A stretch of 64,000 nucleotides of DNA, taken from positions 62,001 to 126,000 of the forward strand of contig OW569387.1 in the NCBI GenBank assembly GCA_937625935.1, in the 5' to 3' direction. Positions 34,912 through 40,967 of this stretch are shown piece after piece; positions within the stretch are counted from its first letter, which is position 1, and the number at the start of each line of letters is the position of its first letter. The notes under the pieces are model-generated. The model made no database searches. It was not told the DNA's origin and saw only the letters and a list, made by a program, of their open reading frames with translations. Made by a program: the position numbers and the translations under genes. This stretch comes from Tetramitus jugosus (taxonomy: Eukaryota; Protista; Heterolobosea).

Positions 34912-35015
34912 ACAATACAACCTCAATTTTTCCGCTCCTTTCCCCGCTTTGTTTTCGCGCTCCTCCAACAAACACTCGAACTGTACATGTTTGAACATTG
35001 ACAATTGAAAGCATC

Positions 35016-35906
35016 ATGTTGATCAAAAGGTACACATGGCTCAAAATGATTGTGCCATCAGTCATTGGCTTCGTCATTGTAAACTCTCTCCATACACCCT
35101 CCTTTTTCAACCCACAAACCATTCATCGATCTCAATTTGATCGAAGCAAAGCTGTTCCTCTCACATCACTCATCGATGGAGATGATGAAGAAAATGAGGT
35201 GTGGCGTCATGATAAACCCCTGTTTGAGCACTACCAAAAACAGTATATTCGTTATGGTAGCTTAAACCATTTGCTCATGGACAGTGAAGACTGTTTACAA
35301 AGTCGGTTGACTGCTCTTGCGGAGAAGGCATCTCCAAGTAGTGAGAATGAAAAGGGTGAAAGCTCTTCTTCTTCTTCTTCGAGTCTAGAACAACAACACA
35401 AGTACCACATTGATCAATCCATGGTGATTGTTCGTGAGGGAACGTGTGGCTTTCCGATTCAATTCATTTCAATGCGCTCAGACTATGCTCAGGTAGTGTT
35501 GTCTGGCGTGTTGAGAGTTGAACAATCAAGCTCTAGCTCGCTCTCTCCATCTTCATTGTCATCGTCCTCGTTGGATGGCAGGGAAATTTGTGTCCTGGGC
35601 ACATCGGTCAATAATAAACCATTTACAATCGATCATTTGATGATTGTGGAGGACAATGGCGAATTGAGACATGTATTTGATAACCCAATCCCACAATTGG
35701 ACTTTTTGAATCGGTTCTTTAGATCAAGGAAGGTAATTCAAACAGAATTTGTGAACGGAGGTTTGATATCTTCAGCAGTGCAGGACGAAAATGAGTTTAA
35801 GTGCTTGGATAACAAGACAGGTGTACTATTGAACGAAATGAAACCTTACTTTGAATATGAACGGAAGAAAACCTTTTGGCAAAAGGCTCTTTCATTGGTC
35901 ATCTAG
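35016..35906 (+). CDS. Hypothetical protein with N-terminal hydrophobic anchor and poly-Ser linkers
   Basis: ~296-aa ORF, no recognised motif. Confidence 0.65.
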   Translation: MLIKRYTWLKMIVPSVIGFVIVNSLHTPSFFNPQTIHRSQFDRSKAVPLTSLIDGDDEENEVWRHDKPLFEHYQKQYIRYGSLNHLLMDSEDCLQSRLTALAEKASPSSENEKGESSSSSSSSLEQQHKYHIDQSMVIVREGTCGFPIQFISMRSDYAQVVLSGVLRVEQSSSSSLSPSSLSSSSLDGREICVLGTSVNNKPFTIDHLMIVEDNGELRHVFDNPIPQLDFLNRFFRSRKVIQTEFVNGGLISSAVQDENEFKCLDNKTGVLLNEMKPYFEYERKKTFWQKALSLVI

Positions 35907-35998
35907 ATAACCCCGGGTTCATTCCCTTCAGGAACCCAAACATAAATCGGGATGATTACAAACAAGAAAAAACATTTCCAAGGTAACACAATACAGCA

Positions 35999-37747
35999 AT
36001 GATGAGAAAGATCATTCGGTTGGGATGTCCCATTCATAATAAACACGGGATGAACACGGTTAGGGGTTTCTTTTCTTCTGCTGTATTTATGAGAGAAACA
36101 ACCACCTTTGAAGAAGAGGAATATCTCTATGAATGGTCATTGCGATGTGATGCAGTCTCCAAGCCATATGCTGAATCACTGAAAGCCTTCAATACCTTGT
36201 TGGAGATGAAGCCTAATGATACCAATCTCCGATTCAAAAAGGGTCGCATGCTCCTTCAGAATGGTCACCTGGATGATGCGATTAACACATTTCAGTCATC
36301 GTTGGGAATTGATGAAAATTTCAAGTTGGCTCATGTAGCTCTGGGATCAGCGTATCAGTTGAAGCATTGTTACGATTTAGCAATGGAACACTATGTCAAG
36401 GCATTGGAGATTGATCCAAATTATAGTGTGGCTCACTTTGGAATAGCTGTACTGTATTCCAAGCTGCACAAGGATCAAGAATCGTTGGACCATTTCCAGA
36501 AAGCACTGAGATTGGACTATGAGCGAAAAGTGTCTTTCAATACTGAGAGAATGGAGGGTCAATATAGGGATCTCCTCTATAAAATGTATCAAGATGCAGT
36601 GACGGATCCAAGTCTGACTTTGTCAATTGTTTACGATGAGGATCAAGCGCATGTGGACCCAAAAAGGGACGATCTGACAGTAATTTTTCCAGAGGAGGAA
36701 GGTAGATACAACGACTCAAATCGGTTGTTTGCGCACAACAAGTTTAAAGTTGGAGATATTATCGCACCAGGAGTTGAGATAGCAACAGTTGAGATGGACA
36801 AGGTGTGCCTTAGCTTGTCTGCGCCAGAAGCGGCTCTCATTACAGATGTGTGGGAAACATCTGAAAGCTCAAAAATCCATCCAGGAACAACACCTGTTGT
36901 AAAGTACATACCGCTGCGAGTCCAAAAGCTGAAGCCTAGTGACTTGTTACCAACAATACAGGATATATATCCAAAAGAAGCTGCGAGCATTATTAAAAAA
37001 GCCAACAATGTAGTGGTACTGAGTGGATCTGGCTTATCCAAAGAGAGTGGACTGAAAACAAGAAAAGAAATGTGGACTACCTTGTCGAGAGAGAAGTATG
37101 TCGGTAATTGGAATTTCACTCAGGAGCCTGAAAGATTGTGGGAGTTGGTGAAGGACTTTCTGGGTGAAGTTAATTTTGATCCTAAACCCAATGCAGCACA
37201 TTATGCTGTCGCTGATCTGGAAAAGCTGGGATTTGTGAAGGGAGTCATAACTCAGAATGTGGATAATTTGCACCAAGTCTCGGGTAGCATGAATGTAATT
37301 GAAATGCATGGGACTTTGTCTGAGACAATATGTACTTCCTGTGATGTTGTCCATGGAAATTGTGTGGATTATCTGAATAGGGATTTCCCTCCCAGATGTC
37401 CATCATTCCACCAAAAGGAATGTTGTATAAATATGTCCAACACACCAGGCATACTCAAGCCAAATGTTGTTTTGTTTGGCGATCTCATTGATCCAGACAA
37501 GCTTAAGAATGCTTATGAACTTGTGATGAATTGTGATGTATTGTTGGTTGTAGGAACGGCTGCCGATGTAACACCTTGCTCGGAACTGCCAGCAATCGTC
37601 AGTAAGAATGGAGGAACAATCATTGAAGTGAAGAGAAACCATTCAAGACTGGCCAACCATCAACTCGAGAACCATATGTTTGTTTCGGGAGAAGCTGCCA
37701 CAATTTTACCTGCGATTGTTGATTATATCGCGAAAGATCAAGACTAA
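35999..37747 (+). CDS. TPR + lipoyl/biotinyl-attachment-like domain + Sir2 sirtuin fusion protein
   Basis: TPRs (AHVALGSAY...ALEIDPNYSVAHFGIA); VGDII..GVEIATVEMDKV..LSAP; sirtuin SGSGLSKESG, PNAAH, ITQNVDNLH, EMHG, CxxC, KPNVVLFG, VGT. Confidence 0.88.
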   Translation: MMRKIIRLGCPIHNKHGMNTVRGFFSSAVFMRETTTFEEEEYLYEWSLRCDAVSKPYAESLKAFNTLLEMKPNDTNLRFKKGRMLLQNGHLDDAINTFQSSLGIDENFKLAHVALGSAYQLKHCYDLAMEHYVKALEIDPNYSVAHFGIAVLYSKLHKDQESLDHFQKALRLDYERKVSFNTERMEGQYRDLLYKMYQDAVTDPSLTLSIVYDEDQAHVDPKRDDLTVIFPEEEGRYNDSNRLFAHNKFKVGDIIAPGVEIATVEMDKVCLSLSAPEAALITDVWETSESSKIHPGTTPVVKYIPLRVQKLKPSDLLPTIQDIYPKEAASIIKKANNVVVLSGSGLSKESGLKTRKEMWTTLSREKYVGNWNFTQEPERLWELVKDFLGEVNFDPKPNAAHYAVADLEKLGFVKGVITQNVDNLHQVSGSMNVIEMHGTLSETICTSCDVVHGNCVDYLNRDFPPRCPSFHQKECCINMSNTPGILKPNVVLFGDLIDPDKLKNAYELVMNCDVLLVVGTAADVTPCSELPAIVSKNGGTIIEVKRNHSRLANHQLENHMFVSGEAATILPAIVDYIAKDQD

Positions 37748-38041
37748 AGTCTTGCGAACACACAGTACAGGGATGTTGCTGGTGCCGTTGTCCTGTCCAC
37801 TTGTGTGTGCAACTACTCAGCCCCTAGTAATTTGAGTGAACAATTTAGAGTATGTTTGATAAACAACCTATTCCAAATGGAATGCGGTTGAGTATCTTGA
37901 GATAATAAAGTATTCTTCACACAATCATTCTCATGTTGTTCATGTTCCGTGCACTTAGATTGGAAGATCAGAAGGTTTTTCCATGTCTATTGGCCCATTT
38001 TTGATCCACTCACTATAAAGAGTAATGACGTATGGTAGTTC

Positions 38042-40486
38042 CTACTTACTACCAACTTCCACGGAGGGACAAAAGTTTGAAGATTCAAATCTTTCTCTCA
38101 ATTCAATCAAAGCTTCGTCTCTGGGACACTGTGACAACAATTTCGAAACTAAAGTGCGAGCAGAGCTGAGATTGTTCTCTTCAATGAGTTGTTTCACTTG
38201 AGATGTGGCACTTTCCAGTTCTTTTTGCTTTTCTGATGCCTTTTCTCTCTCACACAGGACTTCAAAAACGTGAACTGAATGAATAATGATGTCAGGGCAT
38301 GATCAACCAAAGTTGCAATGAATGAAAGAGCAATACATACTGGGTTGAGATTTTCCTTTGACACAAACAAAGGATATCCATCGACAGATAAAGTGATCTT
38401 GGACTTCTTCTTTTGTCTTGGGTCCAATCATTATTGATGTTTCATATCGTTTGTTCAGTGACATTAATCGACTGGCCACATTGACTGCATCACCCAATGC
38501 TGTATAATTGACTCTAGTTCGACTTCCAACATTCCCAACAAAACACATATCTGTGTTTACTCCAATTCGAACGGAGATTGTGGGACGATCCTTGCTTTTC
38601 CACTCTTGATTCAATTCGCGAACACTCTGGTGTATCTTAAAGCATGCTCGAATAGATCTGATTTCGTGATCATCAATGCTCAATGGTGCATTGAAGAGAC
38701 ACATGATTCCTTCAGGAATATACTTGTCAACCACTCCTCCTTCATCAGTCACAATTTGAGAGAAAGAAGTGAGCATGACTTGCAACATGTCCACAAGAAG
38801 ATTTGGTGAAAATCCATCCGTATCCTCCAATCTAGTTTCAATGAACATTATTGTTATTCTCTTTCTCACAACTCCAAGTTGAACACTCGTATTTCTTGAC
38901 ATCAACACTCGAACAACATCTGAAGGAACATAAGCATCAAAACATCTAAGTCCATTTTTCAATTGTCTGATAGATTGTGTCATGACTGCAATCTCAAAGA
39001 GAGGAAGTGAGTGAATCTTGCTCTTCTGCTTCCTAAAGTTCATCTCTGTAATTGTCACGAATTCTCTTGCTATTTCATACAATGGAACTGATATCATTAC
39101 ACTTACGATAAGGGCAATCAGAAGTGCCCCAATGATCGTGCAAATTGTCACAATGGCCAAGACTCGGTTCGATTTGTTCACAACCTTCAAAATAACAGCT
39201 TCAGAAAGCACAGATATCAAGTTCCACCTGAGACCAAAATTGTCTCGGAATCCAATGACTGTAATCTTCCATTTCTTGCCTGTAGAATCAACAAGATTCA
39301 AACCAACAAACTCGTTAGTATCTGCTGTCAAAGGTACTCCAAAGGAACTCTCGATAACCTCAGCTGATTCACGAATCACCAAATCTGTGCTGTTTTTCGC
39401 GTTGACTACTTTTCGATTCCCAGGCTCTGAATCATCTGTGATATGACCCTTGTTAACTGCCACTAATGTCATATCACTCTGCACAACATACACTCTTGTT
39501 TCCGGGAAAACGACAAGAGATCTCAAGAAGTCAGAGAGAGTTTCTAGGTTAATTGAAGCAGTTACTACGCCATACAAACTTCCATCATTCACATCAAAGT
39601 ATGGTCCGGCCACTGGGGCTGTCAGATGCTGCGGTATCGATGCAGTGAAGAAAATCGGTCCCCATTGAATCGCACGAGCTTTCTCTGCAATCACGTACCA
39701 AGGACGTTTGGTTGGGAAGAATCCTGGTTGGATATCAACAGGTTTTGGTGCAACGTCAAGCATATTGTTCATGGCATAGTTTGACACTGTTCCCTCTGCA
39801 GTCGATAATCCCAACTGATATTCCCGTGGAGGATCGTTCACAGTATCGTTCACCATGACTACGATGAAGTAATCGTAACGAGTACCGTACCATACTGTTG
39901 TAATTTTTCGATTTTTCAGTTGACTAAACGATAAAATCTTTTGGATGGTTAGGCTCCTCTCACTCCTCAAGTCACTGAAGTTCAGACCGGACCGGTCTCC
40001 CCATTCCATCTCCTTTATGAGGGTCTGGACAACACTCGGTCCCGAGGCCACAAAGTCTTGCAAATGATTCAGCACTCGGAGAGTCAGAAAATCTCGTTGA
40101 GTATTGGCCACTTGTCTAACACCCCTCCGTATCAGAAAATAATTGGACAACCAAAGTGATATGCCAACAATCACCAAAGAAGTCAATAGCATCACAAGGA
40201 AGACAGTACTGAAGCTCCATGAGAATCGAAGAATCTTGAGTATCATGCGACTCAATCTTTGTTGTCCATCCTTTTTGTTCATACTAGGTTTGAATATCCT
40301 GCACCACGGATGGCGAGTTTTGGTCACTTCTCTCAGATTGGATTGAAAAATATCATCTCCCGATTCGGGAGAATTGGTTGTATTGGTCATTCCTTGATTT
40401 CCTCTTGTATTGTGATGATGAGTTTGTGTAGGAAGGGCAATTTCTGTGGGGATCACAGATTGATTCCTCTCTATTTCTCTAGACAT
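38042..40486 (-). CDS. Receptor-type class III nucleotidyl cyclase copy 3 (inverted), intron 38275-38340
   Basis: Paralog of copies 1 and 2 with the same motifs and intron. Confidence 0.9.
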
Positions 40487-40967
40487 ACACGCGCTTGTTG
40501 TTTCACTTTGTGACGTTCGTTGTCTCCAATGGAAGGTCACAGGGAATAATACAATTTTTCCTCCTTCTTCACGGTTTGATATTTGATTCTCACATACCCA
40601 AGAAGCTCCACAAATTTTCCGGTAAAATTGTTGAATGAAAAAAGGTGGAACCACCATTGAAACAGTGGTAGGATCGCCGAATTAGGTCAATGTGGCTCCC
40701 AATGGACATATAATAACATGAGGAGCCACATGACCACATCTGTGGATATCCAGTCCGGAACTGAAACTATTTAAAGCCTCTGCATCAAGTAAGTCAACTC
40801 TCATTTTTAAACAATTTTTTGTTTCGACCGGTTGTACTTCATGATTTCGTTGACGGAGCTTCAACTTGACCGTCCGCTGTTAGAACTTGAACGAACTTCT
40901 CCTTAAGACAAAAAATCACATGTGGATGAGGCAAGATAAAAGGCACGAGTGAACAACGACTGGTGCT

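Follow-up and report, generated by a model that had tools for sequence, protein, structure and literature searches.

A TPR, lipoyl-type and sirtuin layout in one predicted polypeptide of Tetramitus jugosus, and a short-loop group of carrier-associated sirtuins

The 64,000-nucleotide stretch of Tetramitus jugosus DNA analyzed here (contig OW569387.1, positions 62,001 to 126,000 of the forward strand; hereafter the window, whose numbering is used for all coordinates without a contig name) contains an intronless gene encoding a sirtuin with additional domains. The layout comprises a basic N terminus, approximately four TPRs, a lipoyl-type domain and a complete sirtuin, and this architecture, the homology of its parts and its membership in a distinct sirtuin group are together proposed with high confidence. 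An earlier note on this DNA, made from the letters alone, had proposed the order TPR, lipoyl-type domain, SIR2, and this was borne out by Pfam matches, profile comparisons and the predicted fold.

Domain architecture and the sirtuin catalytic domain

The open reading frame (ORF) starts at its first ATG, with an in-frame stop 4 codons upstream. The full-length AF2 model (mean predicted local distance difference test score (pLDDT) of 83.2, predicted template modeling score of 0.76) revealed a disordered segment at residues 1-33, nine helices spanning residues 37-202, a disordered linker at 211-240, a β-domain, a second, low-confidence linker at 306-312 and a confident sirtuin fold. As a query in Foldseek this model returned sirtuin structures only, and the middle domain was therefore modeled separately. 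The coordinates of all features are collected in the table below.

Features of the sirtuin gene (coordinates in the window)
Feature	Coordinates	Strand	Basis
Whole gene, single-exon intronless ORF	35999-37747	+	ORF list; 582 residues plus stop codon
N-terminal residues 1-33, basic, acid-poor, presequence-like	35999-36097	+	pLDDT <40, predicted disordered
TPR domain, residues 37-202, nine helices, ~4 TPRs plus capping helix	36107-36604	+	Pfam and AF2
Lipoyl-type (barrel-sandwich hybrid) carrier domain, residues ~223-306	36665-36916	+	Profiles, hhalign, model
Hairpin tip E265-M-D-K268; K268 (36800-36802) candidate acyl/lipoyl-lysine	36791-36802	+	Conservation, alignment, model
Sirtuin catalytic domain, residues ~325-582, Rossmann fold plus Zn module	36971-37744	+	Pfam, PDB, Foldseek
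Shortened cofactor-binding loop GSGLSKESGLKTRKEMW, residues 343-359, group signature	37025-37075	+	Gap versus PfSir2A
Catalytic QNVD (residues 419-422) and His437 of HG	37253-37309	+	Positions checked
Zn-binding cysteines C445, C448, C467, C475/C476	37331-37426	+	Positions checked

The TPR region is recognized by Pfam TPR_1 (62.4 bits) and TPR_2 (57.5 bits), as well as by TPR_11 and others, over residues 57-175, and profile matches and paired-helix repeats are both found; its helices are modeled with pLDDT values of 88-98 across residues 41-200, save for one block at 79. The first 30 residues of the protein include five Lys/Arg and no Asp/Glu, as expected from the earlier description of an acid-free presequence-like N terminus, and a part of this segment (RRIIR-LGYPIHNKH) is kept in a paralogue encoded elsewhere in the genome. 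Of five relatives sharing the layout, four have a similarly basic N terminus, the exception being P0002 (an acidic 35-residue window, where the gene call begins at an internal Met). The segment is a possible mitochondrial targeting peptide by its composition, and from a basic, acid-poor and disordered N terminus conserved between the paralogues, the sole pointer to location, we infer that the protein is probably mitochondrial.

The Pfam SIR2 model (PF02146) matches residues 343-526 over its entire length (profile positions 1-180 of 180) with an E value of 3.1e-32 and a score of 112.4 bits, relative to a cut-off of 24. All of the sirtuin motifs are present, with H437-G, Q419-N-V-D422, GxGxS in the form G343-S-G-L-S, and a four-Cys Zn site, in agreement with the earlier report that QNVD, the catalytic His and the Zn-binding Cys residues were kept. 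Across 62 relatives, C467 is invariant, C445 and C448 are nearly so, and Q419, N420, D422, and H437 are unchanged in all or almost all. Judged by the residues present, the domain is a catalytically complete sirtuin.

The most similar solved structures by sequence are Plasmodium falciparum Sir2A (PfSir2A; E = 6e-41), Sir2Af1/2 (2e-38), and SIRT5 (8e-29), followed by Sir2Tm and CobB (to 6e-20), and a Foldseek superposition on PfSir2A (PDB code 3u31) gave a target-normalized TM score of 0.86 with an r.m.s. deviation of 2.2 Å. Among the NCBIfam models those of CobB type score best, albeit under their cut-offs (NF040867, 195.9 versus 320 bits; NF001753, 186.4 versus 243 bits). The sirtuin is of a class III/U-like type on these sequence comparisons. 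A SIRT4-like identity did not hold, as SIRT4 (5oj7) is matched far lower, with an E value of only 3e-17 over half of the domain (positions 11-132), as compared with 6e-41 for PfSir2A. Class M (SirTM) was likewise rejected because the catalytic HG is kept where SirTM has QG; no macrodomain was found in the Pfam scan.

The lipoyl-type domain and Lys268

The region between the TPRs and the sirtuin had been noted for a lipoyl-attachment pattern with its modifiable Lys intact, and the quoted peptide is indeed present, with K268 encoded by the AAG codon at 36800-36802. The Pfam Biotin_lipoyl model (PF00364) scores 17.3 bits on the whole protein (residues 244-286), 20.5 bits on the excised region, and 20.5 bits in a six-frame scan of the genome, all under the cut-off of 22.1 bits, and a search with the single sequence gave marginal matches to E2 lipoyl domains at E values of 1e-3 to 4e-3. 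A profile built from four orthologues found E2 lipoyl domains in the PDB at 5.7e-8 and 8.6e-8, and one built from 14 relatives with the same TPR, carrier, SIR2 order found them at a best E value of 3.5e-16, where all 27 matches were lipoyl, biotinyl, or GcvH-type domains. Comparison by hhalign with five lipoyl domains of E2-type proteins from the same genome gave probabilities of 95.3% and 97.0% (E = 2e-8 and 1e-10), with M-D-K paired on T-D-K and K268 on the lipoyl-lysine. The corresponding domain of P0121, in the same position, reaches 34.3 bits on Biotin_lipoyl and is thus over the Pfam cut-off, and other members of the group score 45-65 bits, with a maximum of 64.9.

The domain (residues 222-322) was modeled separately with AF2 from an alignment made up solely of 14 same-layout sequences, without canonical lipoyl domains. 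The model has a mean pLDDT of 72.8; in the full-length model the flanks of the domain (residues 211-240 and 306-312) are of low confidence. The top Foldseek matches are all lipoyl, biotinyl, or GcvH-type structures, with E values of only ~1e-2, and VIA-align placed the lipoyl domain of Azotobacter OGDH (1ghj) first, with a Z score of 8.8 and an r.m.s. deviation of 2.2 Å over 79 of 79 residues. A search of 48,161 chains that was independent of Foldseek had only barrel-sandwich hybrid domains at its top (Z = 8.3-8.0); a Z score near 8 is not decisive alone and agrees with the sequence evidence. Within the model K268 sits in the turn between the strands at 260-265 and 270-274, similar to the position of a lipoyl-lysine.

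E265 and K268 are invariant in the 14 relatives, among which the distant members are only 16-32% identical in this region, and the A-P-E-A-G stretch that follows is nearly so. The earlier note had made its proposal depend on K268 being conserved in this way, and on recognition of a lipoyl/biotinyl fold; as to the latter, the fold was predicted and the family profile is strong, whereas the Biotin_lipoyl score of the protein itself stays below threshold. Taken together, relatives, profiles, and fold make the lipoyl homology firm, the single-sequence search being marginal, and the middle domain is, by sequence and model, a diverged lipoyl domain. Biotinylation was considered and rejected, as the MKM motif is absent (the sequence is E-M-D-K-V) and the profile matches are led by E2 lipoyl domains.

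The sub-threshold Pfam score and the moderate confidence of the model would also be consistent with the segment being a relic, that is, a degenerate lipoyl-like spacer that is never modified in what would otherwise be an ordinary TPR-tethered deacetylase. This is very improbable given the invariance of E265 and K268 and the near-invariance of APEAG across 14 distant relatives, the full-strength lipoyl domains of other members, and the retention of the domain in both paralogues of this genome.

A short-loop sirtuin group, its relatives and genomic setting

The shortening of the cofactor-binding loop described in the earlier note was confirmed. The loop GSGLSKESGLKTRKEMW comprises 17 residues as compared with 20-21 in canonical relatives, leaving a 4-residue gap with respect to PfSir2A, and the canonical GIPxFR...GLW is absent, replaced by GLKTRKEMW, where Arg-Lys is found in place of the Phe-Arg carried by sirtuins. 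The short form is conserved throughout a group of related proteins. A survey of 162 sequences (159 retrieved, to which the window protein, the paralogue and one viral ORF were added) found the short GLxTR[K/Q]xxW loop in 65 proteins, 30 of them with a detectable lipoyl domain, and the canonical GIPxFR loop in 82, none of which has one. The loop motif of the remaining 15 could not be classified; one of these, P0146, bears a lipoyl domain and has the near-variant GLHSRKSLW. Hence all 31 lipoyl-bearing proteins have the short loop or a near-variant of it. In a maximum-likelihood tree of the catalytic domains, obtained by a quick search with no bootstrap, rooted at the midpoint and with the loop columns included in the alignment, a branch whose SH-aLRT support is 100 separates the 64 short-loop rows from the canonical ones. 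The short-loop sirtuins are a distinct and apparently undescribed group; TPR repeats are usual among them, and a lipoyl-type carrier is present in about half of the detected cases.

An altered cofactor loop throughout the group could affect what becomes of the reaction intermediate, and this raises the possibility that the enzyme acts in the manner of SirTM, by lipoylation-dependent ADP-ribosylation of its own carrier or of a partner, gating access to the lipoyl group in redox stress. SirTM, GcvH-L, and LplA2 are paired, and there ADP-ribosylation of the carrier takes place next to the lipoyl site (PMC4518038), which could be compared with the invariant Glu265 beside K268. However, ordinary E2 lipoyl domains normally have Glu at the K-3 position as well, and it is not special evidence, and class M is characterized by QG for HG and by linkage to a macrodomain (PMC4518038), from both of which the window protein departs. 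Such an activity is accordingly considered improbable.

The layout is far from a one-off. A word-based search found three proteins of the same layout (97%, 74%, and 35% identity), and an exhaustive profile search found many more, so that the combination is now seen in dozens of metagenomic proteins with the carrier in three positions. It is central in the order of the window protein itself, N-terminal in P0127, P0130, P0155, and others, and C-terminal in P0136, P0143, P0151, and others, in which the lipoyl domain scores 48-65 bits and is preceded by a linker rich in Pro/Ala that resembles the swinging-arm linkers of E2. The paralogue (G000:C14:495823-497583; L097:1381-3264) is 76% identical, with the same TPR, carrier, sirtuin layout and a V-E-M-E-K hairpin, and the metagenomic P0002 hardly differs from it. 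The contig that encodes P0127 is eukaryote-like, with eIF-5A and a fused PurK-PurE gene adjoining. A 171,931-base IMG/VR contig, presumably of a giant virus, has a sirtuin gene (L109:3999-5396) whose product combines the short loop GLPTRQHLW with a lipoyl-like domain at the N terminus; the open frame reaches 5396 and may continue in another frame. The annotation of cluster members goes no further than "NAD-dependent deacetylase."

Some of these relatives contain further regions. The C-terminal-carrier proteins (P0136, P0151, P0135, and others; columns ~650-1000 of alignment A8) share, after the carrier, an additional conserved domain of ~250 residues that has no Pfam match and includes an invariant-looking C-P-W...R-G-A-W-P-F-A stretch. 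P0003 (L013:3312-5477, 35% identical) has a C-terminal extension at residues ~575-721 (~145 residues) with no counterpart in the window protein; the extension appears vaguely protein-kinase-like by eye and has no Pfam match.

A feature search of the ESM Atlas returned only unrelated bacterial TPR and SIR2_2 clusters (scores ≤0.77), and a scan of genome contigs with the C-terminal-carrier alignment, which was based on generic sirtuin patterns, found stand-alone sirtuins only among the matches listed (residues ~166-500), a result with no bearing on which organisms have that form. In 301 sampled genomes from the phylum of a Haliangium metagenome-assembled genome, the matches were to the sirtuin domain only, with no short loop or carrier fusion, and three that were examined closely had the canonical FR. 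In one genome of that phylum (G093, L132:3-2695) a canonical-loop sirtuin gene directly follows a carboxylase gene whose last domain is biotinyl (E-A-M-K-M), a further instance of a sirtuin beside a swinging-arm carrier, there in two adjacent genes. The earlier note knew of no characterized protein with this layout, and literature searches on sirtuin-lipoyl fusions, TPR and giant viruses, covering papers available without subscription, found no paper describing it. The single-chain design and the short-loop group therefore appear to be undescribed, the individual domains and sirtuin-lipoyl crosstalk being already known.

Positions 35500-37881 are tiled, without splice joints and at 90-99% identity, by contigs of four soil metatranscriptome runs (including an oligo-dT run), which suggests that the gene is transcribed in near-identical environmental soil relatives, with some residual chance that these RNA-library contigs are of DNA origin. 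The upstream ORF on the same strand (34998-35906) stops 92 bases (35907-35998) ahead of the start codon of the sirtuin gene. As RNA contigs span this gap (35500-36056), either the 5' untranslated region is very short or the transcripts overlap. On the opposite strand, the adjacent 784-residue ORF (38303-40657) has the look, in translation, of an adenylyl/guanylyl cyclase of the membrane receptor type, its extracellular sensor region being large.

The genome holds ordinary lipoyl and biotinyl proteins and two LplA-type lipoate ligase genes (G000:C1:190840-191424 and G000:C6:627485-628108), one of them with a ligase C-terminal domain. Three models (PF16881, TIGR00510, and NF004019) detected no lipoyl synthase in six-frame scans of the one assembly; five radical-SAM genes were found and appear, on reading their translations, to be of MiaB/CDK5RAP1, HemN, RlmN (two), and Elp3 type. 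No match to a LipB-type protein was seen in the genome. Since no lipoyl synthase was found in this single assembly, the amoeba seems to be a lipoate scavenger that depends on salvage.

A candidate NAD+-gated switch and its comparison with known systems

The best explanation for the whole of these observations, to which an even chance is given, is a switch gated by NAD+ in which the sirtuin works on its own carrier. K268 would bear an acyl group, most probably a lipoyl group attached by either of the two LplA-type ligases, and, being on a flexibly tethered swinging arm, could reach the sirtuin pocket of its own chain in cis or that of another subunit. With NAD+, the sirtuin would remove the acyl group or alter the arm in some other way, the protein thus being a lipoyl-carrier switch that is self-contained and gated by NAD+, and the TPRs would dock the protein to partners such as components of the 2-oxoacid dehydrogenases or the glycine-cleavage system, thereby tuning protein lipoylation. 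The part of this proposal in which the sirtuin acts in cis on its own carrier is held at slightly less than even. The association between loop and carrier, the shuffled domain orders, and the flexible linkers fit such a role; in particular, the tether is kept while the geometry of the domains varies, as would suit a mobile substrate or cofactor arm. Precedent for the chemistry is provided by CobB and SrtN, which are NAD+-dependent lipoamidases (PMC5596343), and by SirTM, which modifies the lipoyl carrier GcvH-L only once this is lipoylated (PMC4518038).

Several observations weigh against an own-carrier switch. The D-K-A consensus flanking K268 is loose in the family, where EK, SK, AK, KK, and LK occur; the lipoyl domain of this protein is below the Pfam cut-off, and its N-terminal half is poorly conserved and modeled with low confidence. 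In addition, 35 of the short-loop relatives have no detectable lipoyl domain, and, even if some of these are fragments or have degenerate hairpins, a short-loop sirtuin can evidently work without a fused carrier. Finally, with Phe-Arg changed to Arg-Lys in the loop, deacylation is not assured.

Some of these points would be accommodated if the lipoyl domain and TPRs were instead a docking or decoy module, targeting the sirtuin to lipoyl-recognizing enzymes (E1, E3, ligases, and glycine-cleavage proteins). The substrates would then be the acyl-lysines of other proteins in trans (such as lipoyl-E2 and GcvH), with K268 conserved for recognition and not for turnover. TPRs are protein-protein interaction modules and are found in almost all members, 35 short-loop relatives have no detectable carrier, and poor conservation of the N-terminal half and of the loop between strands 1 and 2 of the lipoyl domain is consistent with docking, as is the action of CobB, SrtN, and SIRT4 in trans on E2 and GcvH (PMC5596343). 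Against this, an invariant hairpin Lys and Glu at ~20-30% identity are as expected of a modified residue, and the shuffled domain order and flexible linkers are more readily reconciled with a swinging arm than with a fixed surface for docking. Nor are we aware of any lipoyl domain whose sole function is that of a targeting tag. Docking is regarded as rather unlikely.

A bolder form of the own-carrier switch, unlikely in itself and put forward as speculation, is that the carrier-fused short-loop sirtuins are a dedicated new class that cycles lipoyl on its own arm. A salvage ligase would load K268, NAD+-dependent removal or hand-on would meter or relay scarce lipoate, and giant viruses that infect amoebae may have captured the module to retune the mitochondrial metabolism of the host. 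The occurrence in a presumed giant virus, together with a host seemingly without lipoyl synthase, hints at roles in lipoate economy and in metabolic conflict between virus and host.

How sirtuins recognize lipoyl carriers, and why cells strip lipoate, are questions that a single chain containing both enzyme and carrier would help to address. The fusion, with its three domain orders and its own loop signature, offers a system in which sirtuin-lipoyl recognition can be studied structurally and kinetically, and the group of sirtuins that it defines is left unnamed by current classifications. To our knowledge, sirtuin control of lipoylation is known only through enzymes acting in trans (SIRT4, CobB, and SrtN) and through the SirTM/GcvH-L operon.

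A parallel in design is found in dihydrolipoamide dehydrogenase (E3; 5u25), a flavoprotein oxidoreductase of the 2-oxoacid dehydrogenase complexes that acts on the lipoyl-lysine and has a lipoyl domain of its own, at the N terminus of the same chain. The family profile matches that domain; the analogy is one of design only, as E3 is not a sirtuin. With regard to the catalytic domain, PfSir2A (3jwp and 3u31) is the closest solved structure, at ~30% identity, and according to the title of its PDB entry has a preference for lysines with medium and long fatty-acyl groups, hydrophobic as lipoyl is. It differs in having little beyond the catalytic domain and in possessing the FRG loop residues that are deleted in the window protein.

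In terms of reaction, the nearest precedents are CobB, SrtN, and SIRT4, which delipoylate E2 and GcvH lysines in an NAD+-dependent manner (Rowland et al. 2017, PMC5596343), CobB being also the type of the best-scoring NCBIfam models. These are stand-alone enzymes with a GIPxFR loop that act in trans, in contrast to the short TR[K/Q] loop, TPRs, and built-in carrier found here. In terms of organization, the SirTM/GcvH-L/LplA2/macrodomain system (Rack et al. 2015, PMC4518038) is the most similar, as it too couples a sirtuin to a lipoyl carrier of the same fold, with a ligase in the system, and the domain model also matches the structure of GcvH-L (5a35; Z = 6.8). SirTM is a QG-containing, macrodomain-linked ADP-ribosyltransferase, whereas the window protein has HG and TPRs and no macrodomain; and the SirTM carrier is a separate GcvH-like protein encoded in the operon, whereas here an E2-type lipoyl domain lies in the same chain as the sirtuin.

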